A stretch of DNA of 64,000 nucleotides. Origin: Pavona decussata (lineage: Eukaryota). The stretch spans positions 6,696,001 through 6,760,000 of the forward strand of contig CDRNST010000006.1 of assembly GCA_977016875.1 (NCBI GenBank), read 5' to 3'. Below, in pieces: positions 11,931 through 55,372 of this stretch. The stretch's first letter is position 1; each line of letters opens with the position of its first letter. The notes beneath the pieces were generated by a model. It was not told the DNA's origin and did no database searches. It was given only the letters and a program-made list of their open reading frames with translations. Made by a program: the position numbers and the translations under genes.

Positions 11931-13435
11931 TCAGAGATGAGCTCCCAACCACCACTGGGTGGTGGATTGGCTTCCCTGTGTACAGCGGAACTTTGGGTTG
12001 ATGTGTGCATAGTGGCCAAAGTTGTCTTCCTCTCTCACTGAACCCGCCTTTGGCCTAAACTGACAGGTAGCGTATGTACTGTCAGTATGCAGAAAGTTGC
12101 TTTTAGCACCCTGCCAAAAAGGTACCGTTTGATGGATCCCGATGTGTCCGCGGATGTTGATGTATTCAACTTTTTTGCATTTGTTGCTGACAAGGTCATC
12201 CACGATGTTGAAGTCTTTGATGTTTCCACGCACGTAATCTCTGAAATCGACGCCGTAGGTCGGGTAGCTGCATGTTGCTCGCCAGTGAGTGGAGTGACTC
12301 TGTAGGGACTTCATTCGTGCCAAACTCAAGCGGTACAGATTCCAGTTCTGTGCGTTCTCGTTCACTGGAGAGTTGTACTTGAAAGGAATCCTCTGAAAAG
12401 CGGGCAGCTTACGATTTCGAGTACTCCATGAGGTGACTAGGGTCCAGGCAGTGCCAGGCTCGGACTTGAGATCACAGTAAGCCGGGTAACTGTTTCCGCC
12501 ATTATCGTAAAGTCTGTAGACTCCACATTTTGAGGCTCCTCTCAGCAGATAATCAAGGCAGGAGGTTGGACGGAAGAGTTTTCGCTGAATTTTAGTTGAT
12601 TTAGGACAATCGTCTCCCTAGGAAAAAAAGAGAGAGAGAGAAAAAAAAAAAAGAACAAAGAATTAAAATCGCTGACCTTTATGGCACGAAAAATATCGCA
12701 ATATTGTCCACGACTCCATTAATGTACAGATTAGTTCAGACATTGACATTGTGAGGAGCGAATTCAGGGATCAACGTGGTCGACCAGAACTTTTTGTTAC
12801 AATTTGCTCTGATTATATTTTTAGTTTCTTTTTCTACTAAAATATCTTAAAAAGCGAATGAAATTACAAAAATAGATTAACTTGTGAGCTTTCACTCGGC
12901 AAGAAAAACTCGAAACTTAGACATCAGTGTTTGAAGTATTTTACCTCGCATCCCAGTGTAAGAACTCGTTTGTGCCGTCTGTGCTTAGCAGCTGCTGCAA
13001 GTGCCTGATGAAGAAAGATTTGAAAATTAGGCAGTTGAATAGTGAGGATCATATTCTTGTTGTTAAATCAGACATGGATTTTGTCCATCGAATAACTGAA
13101 ATCCTGGGATTCCTGCGACTTTGTAGGTGGCGGGAGTAATTATAATATAATTGTAAGTTATATTTCTTGGTCATGCGGCGTTACTAAGCAAAACTATAGA
13201 CAAGAGTATTAAGCCCTAAAATAGGCTCAATAAAACGGTCATTTCCTTCCTTTCCGGGTTACGTAGCTCCATGCATCGCTTGCCGGTTTGAATTTCGTCC
13301 CTAACATTGTGAGTTTGGTGATAATTGTGCACATTTAACACTGGAAAGAACGTTAGAGGAATAGTGTTGTGTCGCAGACCAAACACTTACGAGAAAAGTG
13401 ATGCCAATAAAAGCCGCGATTATCTTAAATGCCAT
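11931..13435 (-). CDS. g1: secreted fibrinogen-related/intelectin-like protein, 263 aa; exons 13435-13391, 13004-12945, 12617-11931
   Basis: GT-AG phase-0 introns. MAFKIIAAFIGITFL/ALAAAAKHRRHKRVLTLGCE/GDDCPK...PTSCLDY...GVY...YCD...AWTLV...EDNFG...TTQWWLGAHL*. The SCxDY-GVY-YCD-WTL motif matches the start of fibrinogen-related domains. AATAAA on the minus strand near 11800. Confidence 0.9.
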
Positions 13436-16400
13436 CGTTAGATTTCCTCGAAACTCGCTAGTTTTGAATTTAGCTCCAAGAAAAAACAGGGTTTGGAAAC
13501 CGCTTCGTTGCTGACCGCGAGTATCTCCTCAACAAACGAGCAGTCTAGGCTGTGTGTTATATTACGTACCACCGAAATATCAGGTGAATAAATCAAAAAC
13601 ACGAAAACGTATTCCACTTAACATGTTTTGGGGACTAGACAAATGGAGCAAAAAAAATTCGGTTGTTGCTGTGACAACTTGATGTCAACCGGAGTTTGTC
13701 ATTTTCATTTTTCTAATGGTTCGTTTCTAGAGCCTGAGTGCACGGCAAGCAAGGTGTTAAGTCTGGGATCATTTATTTATCCACGAGACAATTTGAAACT
13801 GAATGCAGATTCTTTCGATAAAAAAGCATTATTATTCTTGTTGATTGTTGAAAAGTTTTTTGTTTTTAAATTTGAGGTTTTTGGTTAATGCGCTGTAAAA
13901 CTGATGCATTATTTTGAGTCGGAGCAAACAATAAATTTGAAACTTCAGTACTCCTTCGTCCTGCGAGAAAGAGATTGTTTTCCTTTTCTGCTTCGAAGCA
14001 GAAAGGAAACCTCTGGCTTGCAGGGTAGTTCCCATTACATAAGAAAAGAGATCCGCTGCTACCTGTCGTATGTCTATACTTACGATTCACCCGCTATAAT
14101 TTGTCAAAGTCAATTTGGTGGGTTCTTGTACAGCTAATCACTCTAAGGTTGTGAATGTTTACAGAATGAATTGTTTAGTTGTATATGTACACTGTACGTA
14201 ATATTCAATACATATTCTAGTTTTGGAAATTGTTAGTTAAATCTTTATATATCATACCTTACGATTCCATACCTCATTCAGATCAAGCCGTATTTTTGCA
14301 TTTTTCATGTTGAGTTCAGTCAGTGATTTGAGGAAACAGTGTTTGGATTGTTAACAGTAGTAATAGTAAATAGTAATAATCAGGGATTAGTAAAGTGCGT
14401 TTGATTTGTCTTTTCTCTGCTAAAAGTTTCTGCTAAAACCAGAAATTCGTTATTAAAAGTGGATTTCAGGGAGGAGGTTGTCGAGAATTACCATGTATCA
14501 AACTTTGTTCTGGTACAATGCAATAAACTCAGTGAATGTAGCAAAACTCAACACAGTGAGTCAGTGATATGAGGAATCAGTGTTCTGATTGCTTACATAA
14601 AACAATAACAATTTCTTACCTGGAAACTTTTTGGCAGTGAAATTAAGGAATAAAGTAAGTCTGCATGCTGGAATATTCAGAACTGCGCTTGTGTTAAGTT
14701 TTTCCGAATCAACAAGCCCACGAGACCCATTCGCATGGAAGATGAACATGTATTTAGGAATACGACGCAAATTATTTCGGTGCAACTCAATTTGTGGCCG
14801 GGATATTCAAACTCCGTAAACTAAAGAAATTTGGCCAAAAGCTTTGGCTGATCAAATTTAAGATCTCTAAGCTCTAAAAGAGTCACAACATCAACTTTTG
14901 TCTTTTCCTTATATTTCTCTAAATTGATGTAGCGTGGACTTTATAGACGAATCTCCGATGGAACCAAAAAACGCGAATGTCAGCTTCCAAACCTTTATTT
15001 CTCAGCTTTGATCAGTGAATCTTTTACCAAGTACCTTATAGGTATTCTGGGTTTTAACATCTTTCAAATCGTTTTTGCAGAAATTATTTTTCATCGGATT
15101 TATATACAAAGCCTGCATTTAGCGCCATATTTGCCATAATTCAAAATGGCGTACAGGCAAAAAAGATTTCCTCTTCCCCTCTTAGGTGCATTTGCAATGC
15201 GAAAAGATCGCTGACTAAACCACAAGCTTTTTTTAGGATTGGTAGGCAAGTCTGTAGCATTATGATACAAATGGATGACTGATGAAACGTTTGGTTGTTG
15301 AAGTCAATCGACTGTTTGCATGTTTTCGTAAGATACTGTTCCCGCCATTTAGTTTCAGTGTAAGCGATTCGCGAATCCATGCCTCATTTGTGTAATCAAA
15401 GCATCCCCATCTCGTAAAACTCAACCGAGTTACACCTTCAAACATGAAATATACATCTCAAGTACTTTTTTGTGACCGCAAAGATGAGAAATGGTTATAT
15501 GTACTAAACGATAAAGCGTGTCTTGTATGGTCAACACAATTAACATGGCGATTTTTAATTACCTCATTTTGATACGCCTCGCACTCATCATTCGCCTATT
15601 CAATTCTTAAACATTAATTTCTTGAAACTGAAAGCCGACGTCTTTCAGGTCATTTTTGTTGTCGTTGTTGTTGAACAACATAATTTAGGCACATATTGTA
15701 CGCAATAATATTGTACGAATTTGTAAGGCTAGGAAAGATTTGATTTTCCACGTTTTTCTGAGGGTCGAAATATTATTCATCTTGTCCTGAGAATTCTTTA
15801 AAGAGAATCACACCCATGAACTTCCGCATACCAAGCTACTGCGAGACTCGTGGTAAAGTGGGTCAGGGAGTCGGTTAGAGATTTTAGCAATTACATGGAA
15901 TGGCGACACAGTCAGCGATCGTCGGATGGCACACAGCTGTTCCATATGATCGATAGCTTATTTTTATTATAACCGCCAGAAAAACCAGGCTTAATGTTTT
16001 CGCTGCTTGTGTTCCAGACACTCAATGAAATTTTCAATTTACAAACACGCGTTTGAGGTTGCTCCTTCTAAGATGACTGAATTGGCATCACAAAACTGAT
16101 AAAGCAATCGAGAGTCAGTACAGCTTTGTCGAGCTTACATGCACCTGCCAAAATGAAATGAGAGATTGTAAGAAATCCGAACGAGGCTGGCGGAGTGAAG
16201 CAGTTGTTTTAGGATCACAAGTAAAATAGCGATTGAACTGTTTGGCAGCTGGAAAATGGCACTGGAATACAAAAACAAAAGAATTTGTAAAAACGTACAA
16301 CTAAGGGGAGAGACGCTGTACAATCCATTTCGTACCTGAATATCATGAACTATTTTCTTGATTCTGTTGGAAAGCCGATCACAATCATTATTATAAAAGT

Positions 16401-53837: not shown

Positions 53838-55372
53838 TCAGAGATGAGCTCCCAACCACCACTGGGTGGTAGATTGGCTTCCCTGTGTGCAGCGGAACTT
53901 GGGGTTGATTCGGTCATAGTAGCCTGAGTTGTCTTCATATCTCACTGAACCTGACTTTGGCTTAAACTGACAGGTAGTGGATGAACTGTCAATATGCACG
54001 ACGTAGCTTTTAGCGATCTGCCAAAAAGGTACCGTTTGGTGGATCCCGATGTGTCCGTGGGTGTTGATGTATTCACCTTTTTTGCATTTGTTGCTACCAA
54101 TGTAATCCACAATGTTGAAGTCTTTAAAGCTTCCACGAACGTAATCTCTGAAATCGACGCCGTGGGTCGGGTAGCTGCATGTTGCTCGCCAGTGAGTGGA
54201 GTGACTCTGTAGGGACTTCATTCGTGCCAAACTCAGGCGGCACAGATTCCAGTTCTGTGCGTTCTCGTTCACTGGAGAGTTGTACTTGAAAGGAATCTTC
54301 TGAAAAGCGGGCAGCTTACGATTTAGAGCACTCCAGGAGGTGATTAGGGTCCAGGCAGTGCCAGGCTCGGACTTGAGATCACAGTAAGCCGGGTAACTGT
54401 TTCCGTCATTATCGTAAAGCCTGTAGACGCCACATTTTGATGCTCCTCTCAGCAGATAATCAAGGCAGGAGTTTGGACGGAAGAGTTTTCGCTTAATTCT
54501 AGTTGGTTTAGGACAATCGTCTCCCTAGAAAAAAAGAGAGAGAGAGAGAAAAAAAAACGAACAATGAATTAAAATCGTGGACCTTTTTGGCGCGAAAAAT
54601 ATCGCATTATGGTCCACGACTCCAGTAATGTACAGATCAGTTCAGACATCTACATTGTGAGGAGCGAATCCAGGGATCAACGTGGTCGACCGGATTTTGT
54701 TGTTGCAATTGCTCTGATTCTAATCTTTTTTCGGTTTCAGGATAGTTTGAAGTCCTGATAATATTTTTAATATTTTTTTTACTAAAATATCTTAAAAAGC
54801 GCATGAAATTACAAAAATAGATAAACTTGTGAGCTCTCACTAGGCAAGAAAAACTCGAAACTTACACATTAGTGTGTGAAGTATTTTACCTTGCATCCCA
54901 GTGTAAGAACTCGTTTGTGCCGTCTGTGCTCAGCAGCTGCTGCAAGTGCCTAGAAGATGATGAAAAACGATTTTAAATTTAGACAGATGAAGAGTGAAGG
55001 TCTTATTCTTGTAAATAAATCAGTCACGGGATTTTGCCCATCAAATAACTGAGATCCTGCGATTCCTGCGATTTTGTAGGTTCAAAAAGGTAAATGGCGT
55101 GAGCAATTATAATATAATTATCAAATTTCTTGCTCATTTGGCCTTACTAAGCAAAACTAGACAAGCGTATTAAGCCCTAAAATAGGCTCAATAAAACGGT
55201 CATTTCCTTCCTGCTTGCCGGTTTGAGTTTCGTTCCTAACATTTTCAGTTTTGTGATAATTTTGCACGTTCAACACTGGAAAAGATCGTCACATGAATAG
55301 TATTGTGTCGCAGACAAAACACGTACGAGAAAAGTGATGCCAGTAAAAGCCGCGATTATCTTAAAATGCCAT
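53838..55372 (-). pseudogene. g6: probable pseudogene of the family; exons 55372-55327, 54949-54890, 54524-53838
   Basis: Exon 1 is 46 bp (extra T), reading ATG GCA TTT TAA. Exon 3 is open but has substitutions at otherwise invariant sites (LYR>LCR, KVE>KGE, NIRG>NTHG, DNFG>DNSG). Confidence 0.8.

Follow-up and report, generated by a model that had tools for sequence, protein, structure and literature searches.

Evidence for unequal crossover and gene conversion within a conserved exon of a tandem fibrinogen-related lectin-like gene array in the stony coral Pavona decussata

Introduction

In the vertebrate MHC and KIR clusters and in the plant NLR/R-gene clusters, short tracts are exchanged between paralogs within a conserved framework, old and diverged patches make the ligand contacts, and unequal crossover leaves hybrid genes. 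Here, we describe a tandem gene array of the stony coral Pavona decussata that can be set beside these systems, although the coral family has a different fold and belongs to a different host phylum, and its immune role and ligand are putative only. The window, i.e., the whole stretch of DNA that was analyzed, is 64,000 nucleotides long (GenBank assembly GCA_977016875.1, contig CDRNST010000006.1, positions 6,696,001 to 6,760,000), and its array part consists of the minus-strand gene copies c1 to c7. An earlier reading of the letters of this stretch (the original prediction) proposed that variable patches of six of these copies, g1 to g6, which are c1 to c6 here, are shuffled among paralogs by gene conversion or unequal crossover. 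It named, among others, the pairwise homoplasy index (PHI) test on exon 3 and separate trees per patch as suitable checks, and a single tree explaining all sites as one outcome that would speak against it.

Two described invertebrate systems come close to this array. The fibrinogen-related proteins (FREPs) of the snail Biomphalaria glabrata are, like the coral family, secreted lectins with a fibrinogen-related domain that form a multigene family, and their diversity was attributed to point mutation and gene conversion between members (PMC3313920, PMC12074976, PMC7588048). FREPs carry one or two N-terminal immunoglobulin superfamily (IgSF) domains and their diversification was claimed to be somatic (PMC3313920, PMC12074976), whereas the coral family has no IgSF domain and no match to the Pfam model PF00147, its predicted fold is nearest to that of intelectins, and its exchange appears to be germline. 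The Sp185/333 (SpTransformer) clusters of sea urchins consist of genes with mosaic elements, for which recombination, gene conversion, segmental duplication and flanking microsatellites were described (PMC5103432). Like the coral array, they are a tightly clustered immune-type family with mosaic combinations. The Sp185/333 protein is unrelated and has no lectin fold, and its elements are present or absent, whereas the coral variants occupy fixed positions of a folded domain. In corals themselves, gene conversion was judged to be very rare among tandem duplicates, as argued in a 2023 paper from their diverged introns (PMC10236652).

Exchange Among Array Copies

The array very probably evolves by germline unequal crossover and interlocus gene conversion within a conserved exon, a reading to which we assign a probability of about 0.85. 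The exchange between paralogs that was originally predicted is carried by PHI and approximately unbiased (AU) tests, by the flank classes and hybrid genes, by a fragment shared with copy a16, and by a polarized tract in c4. The recombination, the hybrid junctions, the one polarized conversion tract and the fold of the product were all read from assembly-level sequence. The PHI, compatibility, fragment-permutation, simulation and AU analyses were our own runs rather than RDP, GARD or GENECONV proper.

A tblastn search of the window with the longest open reading frame (ORF) revealed seven copies of one last exon of 687–693 nt, all on the minus strand and with 85–100% amino acid identity. After translation, exon 3 was placed at 11931–12617 in c1, 22717–23403 in c2, 28841–29527 in c3, 34869–35555 in c4, 46323–47009 in c5 and 53838–54524 in c6. 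Copy c7 (61844–62536; 693 nt, with two extra codons) lies beyond the range of the original prediction and belongs to the same array. Among 684 coding sites of the seven exons, 135 vary and 53 are parsimony-informative, and 51% of the informative pairs fail compatibility. The best single tree joins c1 and c5 with a bootstrap of 100, leaves every other node at 34–72, and requires a rate-heterogeneity parameter alpha of 0.16. When 1000 data sets were simulated on this tree under the HKY+G model (alpha 0.16), the incompatible fraction was 0.387 ± 0.047 (P=0.004 for the observed value) and 18.3 distinct splits were expected against 26 observed (P=0.004). The synonymous informative sites (n=12) were 64% incompatible, compared with 49% for replacement sites. 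The eight synonymous sites in codons of invariant residues reached 71% (simulated P about 0.03), and the power of that simulation is low because the fitted tree is almost a star. Sharing among the window exons is thus not tree-like, as had been claimed; the cause of the pattern is not decided by these exons alone, and the flanks and the other array copies are decisive.

The patches that the original prediction listed as shared are all present in the translations: c5 has PTYG..GNIKDFNIV.DLVS in common with c1, GHF with c4 and KEEDN..YNY with c3, and c4 has HKI/TLN in common with c3, SGEDN with c2, and YIG, KSG and xRIN with c6. The silent changes common to paralogs are equally real, for example at exon positions 387 (c1 and c5) and 624 (c4, c6 and c7). 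The interpretation of the shared patches as short imports needs correction. The c4 tract described below is indeed short, but the c1-like tract of c5 is the backbone of that gene, and "HF" occurs more often in the array than any other state. Several of the listed patches therefore reflect backbone ancestry rather than short imports, and some donors had been assigned wrongly.

The seven window copies belong to a head-to-tail array that has about 30 genes and extends over roughly 400 kb of one contig. A search of the window's own genome found at least 30 copies with 85–98% identity between 6.67 and 7.07 Mb of this contig (G000:C6), all on the minus strand, and at least 128 family matches in the genome, including more distant clusters on other contigs. 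Twenty-two complete or near-complete exon 3 copies, with 220 variable sites of which 120 are informative, were used for array-wide tests; they include copies of a distal block on the same contig (c2p to c5p). PHI gave z values of -8.0, -8.4 and -6.7 for 20-, 50- and 100-bp windows (p<=1e-4), and the Hudson-Kaplan minimum number of recombination events (Rm) is at least 27. The incompatible fraction is 0.21 for pairs less than 10 bp apart, 0.38 at 10–100 bp (p about 0.02) and 0.44 above 150 bp (z +3.1). Maximum likelihood trees of exon positions 1–300, 301–520 and 521–687 reject each other and the whole-exon tree, with log-likelihood differences of 42–150 and AU p values from 5e-3 to 1e-42. A fragment scan detected a stretch common to a16 and c4p/c4 at positions 289–533 (global p=0.0005), and a16 forms runs of 39–68 variable sites with c4p, c4 and a14 (global p 0.0005–0.008); a16 is a chimera of c4-type and c7-type sequence. 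PHI, which was proposed at the outset, and separate trees, made here for thirds of the exon, both point to exchange, and a single tree that would explain all sites was not found among the 22 copies by either PHI or AU.

Several members of the array are broken. Copy a03 (6693933) has a frameshifted 3' end, a11 (6768554) a 1-nt deletion and a12 (6789412) a 5' truncation, and stop codons interrupt two further matches on the same contig (6905647–6906298 and 6935830–6936473). These pseudogenes could still act as conversion donors. Elsewhere in the genome, contig C270 (167577–562200) bears an array of about 45 copies at 43–49% identity and contig C15 a 6-copy array at 73–74% identity, with further matches on C183, C1 and C60.

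Hybrid Genes and Their Junctions

The sequences around exon 3 change partners across it. In a 1.8-kb alignment, the intron 5' of exon 3 groups c2 with c5 through many sites and shared indels, and in the 3' flank c1 goes with c5 and c3 with c4 (PHI across the whole stretch, p<=2e-4). Painting, in which each unit was compared with the other units in 200-nt windows, gave the 5' classes {c1, c4, c6, c7} and {c2, c5, c3} and the 3' classes {c1, c5, c2} and {c3, c4, c6}. All four combinations of 5' and 3' class are seen, and recombination inside the gene is therefore required. The clearest hybrid is c5, whose junction at the intron 2/exon 3 boundary was placed at 46975–47040 (minus strand) by painting, base-level alignment and site patterns. 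On the gene-5' side, c5 is c2-like (91–97%) for about 3 kb upstream, to about 49893; on the 3' side, it is c1-like (92–99%) from the first few dozen bases of exon 3 to about 3 kb past the stop codon (about 43289). Since the c1-like sequence runs through exon 3 and the 3' flank, what had been described as a g1 tract in g5 is the backbone of a hybrid gene with a c2-type 5' part and a c1-type 3' part.

Comparison of 1.4 kb on each side of 25 copies, extended beyond the window, revealed further cases. The 5' flanks of c1 and a19 are 98.5% identical, while their exons differ and their 3' flanks are unrelated; a17 and a18 are 99–100% identical from exon 3 through 1.4 kb downstream, and their 5' flanks are unrelated. 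Similar flank discordance was found for a01/a11 and c5/c5p. In base-level alignments, the c1/a19, a17/a18 and c2/c5 junctions are all found no more than about 40 nt from the boundary between intron 2 and exon 3. They adjoin a poly(T)/(CT)n polypyrimidine tract, or (TTTA)n in a18, which abuts exon 3 on its 5' side (12618–12660, minus strand, in c1) and varies in length and motif between copies. Because similarity between the flank classes starts at the junction zone, the junctions are most simply read as an edge-of-homology effect; that the microsatellite itself helps to form them is speculation.

Larger units were duplicated as well. The array holds the c3-c4 block in triplicate (c3-c4, a13-a14 and c3p-c4p), with flanks that are 95–99.6% identical, and this duplication is real whichever status the distal block has. 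Both marks of unequal crossover, i.e., of non-allelic homologous recombination (NAHR), are thus in evidence: hybrid genes with discordant flank relatives, and block duplications. Among the seven window copies, exon synonymous divergence (dS, 0.09–0.21) does not track flank divergence: c2 and c6 have an intron divergence (K) of 0.43, a flank K of 0.34 and an exon dS of 0.12, and c3 and c4 have a flank K of 0.048 and an exon dS of 0.17. Intron divergence is 2–4 times exon dS, a comparison that is qualitative only, because MAFFT forces non-homologous stretches together and thereby inflates intron K.

The 3' flanks of c1, c2 and c5 contain a Gln-rich ORF of 177–222 aa on the plus strand (window 9796–10464, 20282–20815 and 43879–44547), with DNA that is 89–93% identical. 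Its Pfam match is weak and below threshold, and it could belong to another gene as an exon, or to a repeat that travels with the flank class.

A Polarized Conversion Tract in c4

Conversion events were polarized with two triples of near-identical duplicates, c4/c4p/a14 and c3/c3p/a13, in which the odd one out was taken as derived. With c4p and a14 as references, the core of a c6-type converted tract was located in c4 at 34932–34945 (minus strand; exon positions 611–624), where VYIN has become ERIN. Six derived changes fall within these 14 nt, five of them match c6, including the silent position 624, and the clustering has P=5e-6 for nine random changes; c6 represents the likely donor type. From position 613 to the exon end, c4 equals c6 at all variable sites, which sets the tract length at no less than 14 nt and no more than about 75–110 nt.

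Other sites behave in the same linked manner. Codons 188 and 191 switch jointly: c3 has KPKT where c3p has RPKS, the c4 state, and c5 has RPKA, the c1 state, where c5p has KPKT, the c3 state. Both c4 and c3p have the silent variants 45T and 273T, which c4p lacks, and the N-terminal patch of c4p reads TTIE, as in a16. Of the 52 derived changes in the two triples, 39 match a base of another paralog. Uniform mutation would give an expected share of 0.21, and mutation restricted to variable sites, an extreme assumption, one of 0.54 (P=0.002 for the binomial tail against 0.55). Hypermutation targeted to the patches was also considered. It was rejected on the 13 derived changes without a paralog match, of which, by our own count, 4 lie in patches that make up 24% of the codons; this lack of enrichment argues for templated exchange over targeted mutation.

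Three marks of gene conversion are present, namely a change of signal along the exon, a significant shared fragment, and a clustered derived change that matches a third paralog. Exchange of short tracts, as originally proposed, is borne out by the c4 tract of at least 14 nt and by the incompatible fraction, which rises from 0.21 for sites closer than 10 bp to about 0.40 for more distant ones. A mosaic composed of short tracts throughout is not what was found: the c4 tract fits that description, but part of the mosaic is of long-tract or hybrid-gene origin.

Scaffold, Patches and Selection

Eight variable patches were delimited at codons 7–12, 61–67, 75–77, 129–132, 138–144, 170–183, 188–196 and 202–206. 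Each has 5–17 amino acid variants, many of them common to otherwise unrelated copies, and the combination of patches is unique in all 21 of the 21 intact copies. The patches have a mean dS of 0.33 and a mean nonsynonymous rate (dN) of 0.25, compared with 0.12 and 0.019 in the scaffold, although patch boundaries were chosen by variability, which biases the patch rates; in 102 of 105 pairs, patch dN is higher than scaffold dS. The patches therefore appear old even when judged by their silent sites, and the scaffold appears young, as would be expected from exon-wide homogenization that keeps patch variants. An exchange anchored by a homogenized scaffold, as originally suggested, fits these values (dS 0.12 vs. 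0.33) as well as the intron divergence of 2–4 times exon dS and the junctions at the edge of homology.

Certain scaffold states are common to all array copies and differ from those of every other species in the database, namely WWLGAHL instead of WWFGAHL and NSYPAY instead of NSFPAY; they fit either concerted evolution or a recent common origin. The patches were placed on the structure from the secondary-structure string only (strand from 143, turn at 170–175, long loop at 181–210).

Proposed Mechanism and Alternative Explanations

The process would be homologous recombination between misaligned copies in the germline, presumably in meiosis, and it would take two forms. Unequal crossover would duplicate gene blocks and make hybrid genes, with junctions gathering at the intron 2/exon 3 boundary where similarity starts. 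Interlocus gene conversion would copy stretches of exon 3 between copies; the shortest tract is at least 14 nt and the longest at least 245 nt. Outside the exon, in introns and intergenic DNA, the copies would be too diverged to pair, so that exchange would be confined to the conserved exon. Repeated exchange would keep the scaffold near-uniform, and the eight patches, mostly in the C-terminal half, would persist as a limited set of old variants dealt into new combinations. Selection may preserve this patch diversity, the patches may contact the ligand, and exchange may be a selected "diversification mechanism", as the original prediction had it. A much bolder version can be put forward, in which the array stores cassettes on which a coral recognition repertoire draws: loops would come from intact as well as broken copies, by frequent, possibly ongoing or somatic conversion started at the polypyrimidine microsatellite, and colonies or lineages with different lectin sets would sort symbionts and microbes. 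We consider this version improbable.

Several points weigh against exchange as the explanation. Within the seven window exons, PHI is weak (p 0.014–0.22), the neighbor similarity score (NSS) is likewise weak or borderline, and a GENECONV-like longest-fragment permutation is borderline (global p 0.06 for the c4-c6 3' end and 0.08 for c4-c5 around GHF). Much of the PHI signal in the 22 copies comes from pairs less than 10 bp apart, possibly in part from multi-nucleotide codon changes, and the signal at 10–100 bp is modest. To these are added the inflated intron K and the circularity of choosing patches by variability. The dN/dS of the patches is 0.77 and does not exceed 1, the value that would mark positive selection. 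Finally, the distal block may be a true paralogous block, as assembled, or an uncollapsed haplotype; in the latter case, "post-duplication" would become "allelic" for the changes polarized with it, and the inference of conversion would stand either way.

One alternative is that a single duplication tree without exchange underlies the family, and that recurrent mutation or diversifying selection re-creates the same residues in hypervariable loops. The simulated data sets are already 39% incompatible, incompatibility is nearly flat with distance past 10 bp, and the patch states SGEDN/SSEDN and GT[IV]N are present in other coral species too, all of which would suit such convergence; the extreme rate heterogeneity (alpha 0.16) that the best model needs would suit it as well. 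It is largely refuted by the synonymous informative sites, which are as incompatible as the replacement sites (64% vs. 49%), by PHI, which is robust to rate heterogeneity and reaches z -8, by the AU tests, which reject common topologies, by the non-coding flanks that switch partners across the exon, and by the silent change linked to the c4 tract, and we regard it as very unlikely. Switching by a long-read assembler between near-identical paralogs or haplotypes in the conserved exon is judged highly improbable as well. Over hundreds of bases the exon scaffold is 96–100% identical, which gives an assembler the opportunity to switch, the limits of this similarity coincide exactly with the junctions, and coral assemblies are known to keep allelic duplications (PMC10236652). 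Against this, the conserved stretch is shorter than 700 nt, far below the length of long reads, and the units stand 6–11 kb apart with unique flanks; the same type of mosaic recurs across 22 copies, and a single switch cannot give short internal tracts such as that at positions 611–624 of c4. A second assembled sequence (ctg131800) also agrees with the window at 99.99% along 20,195 bases, a stretch that holds c4 and c5, although it may derive from the same reads and its independence is weak.

The exchange could also be partly somatic or programmed, as proposed for snail FREPs, with the germline array and its broken copies serving as the donor library. Nothing speaks for this directly; the frameshifted or truncated copies (a03, a11, a12 and the two broken matches) could be donors, and the fibrinogen-related lectins of Biomphalaria, which in function are the nearest analogy, were reported to diversify somatically (PMC3313920, PMC12074976). 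All patterns were found in assembled, germline-type sequence, however, and none needs a somatic process; we regard this explanation as extremely unlikely. Germline unequal crossover together with gene conversion remains the preferred reading.

Gene Structure and Predicted Product

The gene model has three exons, as read directly in c1 and compared with the full-length homologs P0006 and P0011. In c1, the coding part of exon 1 (13391–13435, minus strand) is MAFKIIAAFIGITFL, followed by a GT donor. Exon 2 (12945–13004, minus strand; 60 nt) is ALAAAAKHRRHKRVLTLGCE; it encodes the end of the predicted signal peptide, an RHKR furin-type site and the first Cys of CEGDDC, agrees with the N-termini of P0006 and P0011, and is nearly invariant between copies. 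Exon 3 (687 nt in c1, acceptor tag|GGAGAC) starts with GDDCPK and encodes the 228-residue fibrinogen/intelectin-like domain and the stop codon. The product is predicted to be a small secreted protein with a signal peptide, the RHKR site, the CEGDDC (CxxxxC) motif and this domain. Its best matches among proteins carry the label "uncharacterized protein" and come from Montipora, Acropora, Stylophora, Oculina and sea anemones, and the family, which has no name, is anthozoan-wide.

No Pfam family matched the c2 domain at E<=1, and the Fibrinogen_C model (PF00147) did not recognize it; only two homologs in the list, both from sea anemones, have a precomputed PF00147 match. A profile of 56 homologs retrieved lamprey serum lectin (E 7e-7), XEEL, FIBCD1, angiopoietin-2, fibrinogen gamma and ficolin-3, with matches that span about profile positions 20–100, i.e., the N-terminal (A) subdomain of solved fibrinogen-related domains (FReDs). 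The AlphaFold2 model has a predicted local distance difference test (pLDDT) score of 88.4 and a predicted template modeling (pTM) score of 0.86. All of the top 50 Foldseek hits in the PDB are fibrinogen-like domains (E 3e-6 to 7e-4, probability 1.0), with template modeling (TM) scores of only 0.36–0.47. VIA-align over residues 12–228 gave Z scores of 10.9 for intelectin-1 (190 aligned residues, root mean square deviation 3.7), 10.8 for XEEL and 9.9 for ficolins. On these models, the domain is predicted to be a divergent member of the fibrinogen-related/intelectin-like lectin fold (FReD superfamily). Intelectins (X-type lectins) and ficolins, the best structural matches across nearly the whole domain (155–190 aligned residues), are secreted glycan-binding lectins of innate immunity, and the coral proteins are likewise predicted to be secreted. 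The coral proteins differ from them in sequence, with merely 12–17% identity, as well as in the low Foldseek TM (0.36–0.47) and the lack of a collagen or coiled-coil stalk.

The Distal Block and Neighboring Insertions

The distal block (c2p-c5p) lies at 7.02–7.07 Mb of the window's contig and equals the ctg133141 sequences of ENA ERZ25073805 (L001-L003, L005, L006, L008). From the same record, ctg131800 equals window positions 31771–51963 and is the sequence used above as a check on the assembly. Identity between window block and distal block varies by segment, from about 93% to 99.8%. The ctg133141 sequences were at first attributed to another species and then to the other haplotype; the genome search puts them on the window's own contig, at a distance of 305 kb, where they may be either a paralogous segment or an uncollapsed haplotype. 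By arithmetic on record coordinates, ctg131800 and ctg133141 seem to tile this contig, which favors paralogy.

An insertion of more than 10 kb with uninterrupted ORFs lies just 3' of c2p (L001:10647–20801, about 7.0246 Mb). Its ORFs include an HNH_3 endonuclease domain (43.8 bits), a Pox_VLTF3-like match (29.8 bits, over the cut-off) and a 784-aa ORF with a weak Endonuclease VII match, and by these matches it looks like a virus-derived or giant-virus-like element. The 266-aa protein P0001 was initially taken for an intronless or virus-captured copy, which is wrong: it is the ordinary exon 3 of c2p, and its ORF runs on past the C-terminus because the insertion replaces the last 11 nt. Another insertion, of 14.7 kb (L005:4004–18697), is found in the distal block only, at the equivalent of window position 42807, and encodes a Transposase_21 (tnp2/CACTA-type) protein (62.5 bits). 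The next copy after c5p, x6 (L008:11652–12399), is c6-like overall (93.7%), has a c7-type 3' end and downstream flank and the GAKS codons of c1, and carries a 63-nt insertion behind the DY codon in patch P4.

Within the window, two ORFs of 939 and 1014 aa lie at 3164–9054 (minus strand), near the first copy of the array; judged by eye, they look like the gag-protease-reverse transcriptase and RNase H-integrase parts of an intact long terminal repeat (LTR) retrotransposon. Just downstream of c7, at 60320–60927, there is a minisatellite with a 20-nt period, whose copies are 91–95% identical and which contains three overlapping, repetitive plus-strand ORFs.

Implications

The array has diverged introns of the kind from which the rarity of coral gene conversion was argued, yet it recombines within the exon, and it stands against that published generalization (PMC10236652). 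This suggests that exon-restricted conversion escapes tests that are built on the conservation of whole genes or of intron structure. The mechanism itself is already familiar from tandem immune-type families; what is new is the protein family and its host. Corals have no antibody-type immunity and must distinguish symbionts, commensals and pathogens. Secreted lectins that form large and rapidly changing families are prime candidates for this task, and the array offers a defined locus, with defined junctions and a recent tract, for studying continuing or somatic exchange in a cnidarian.

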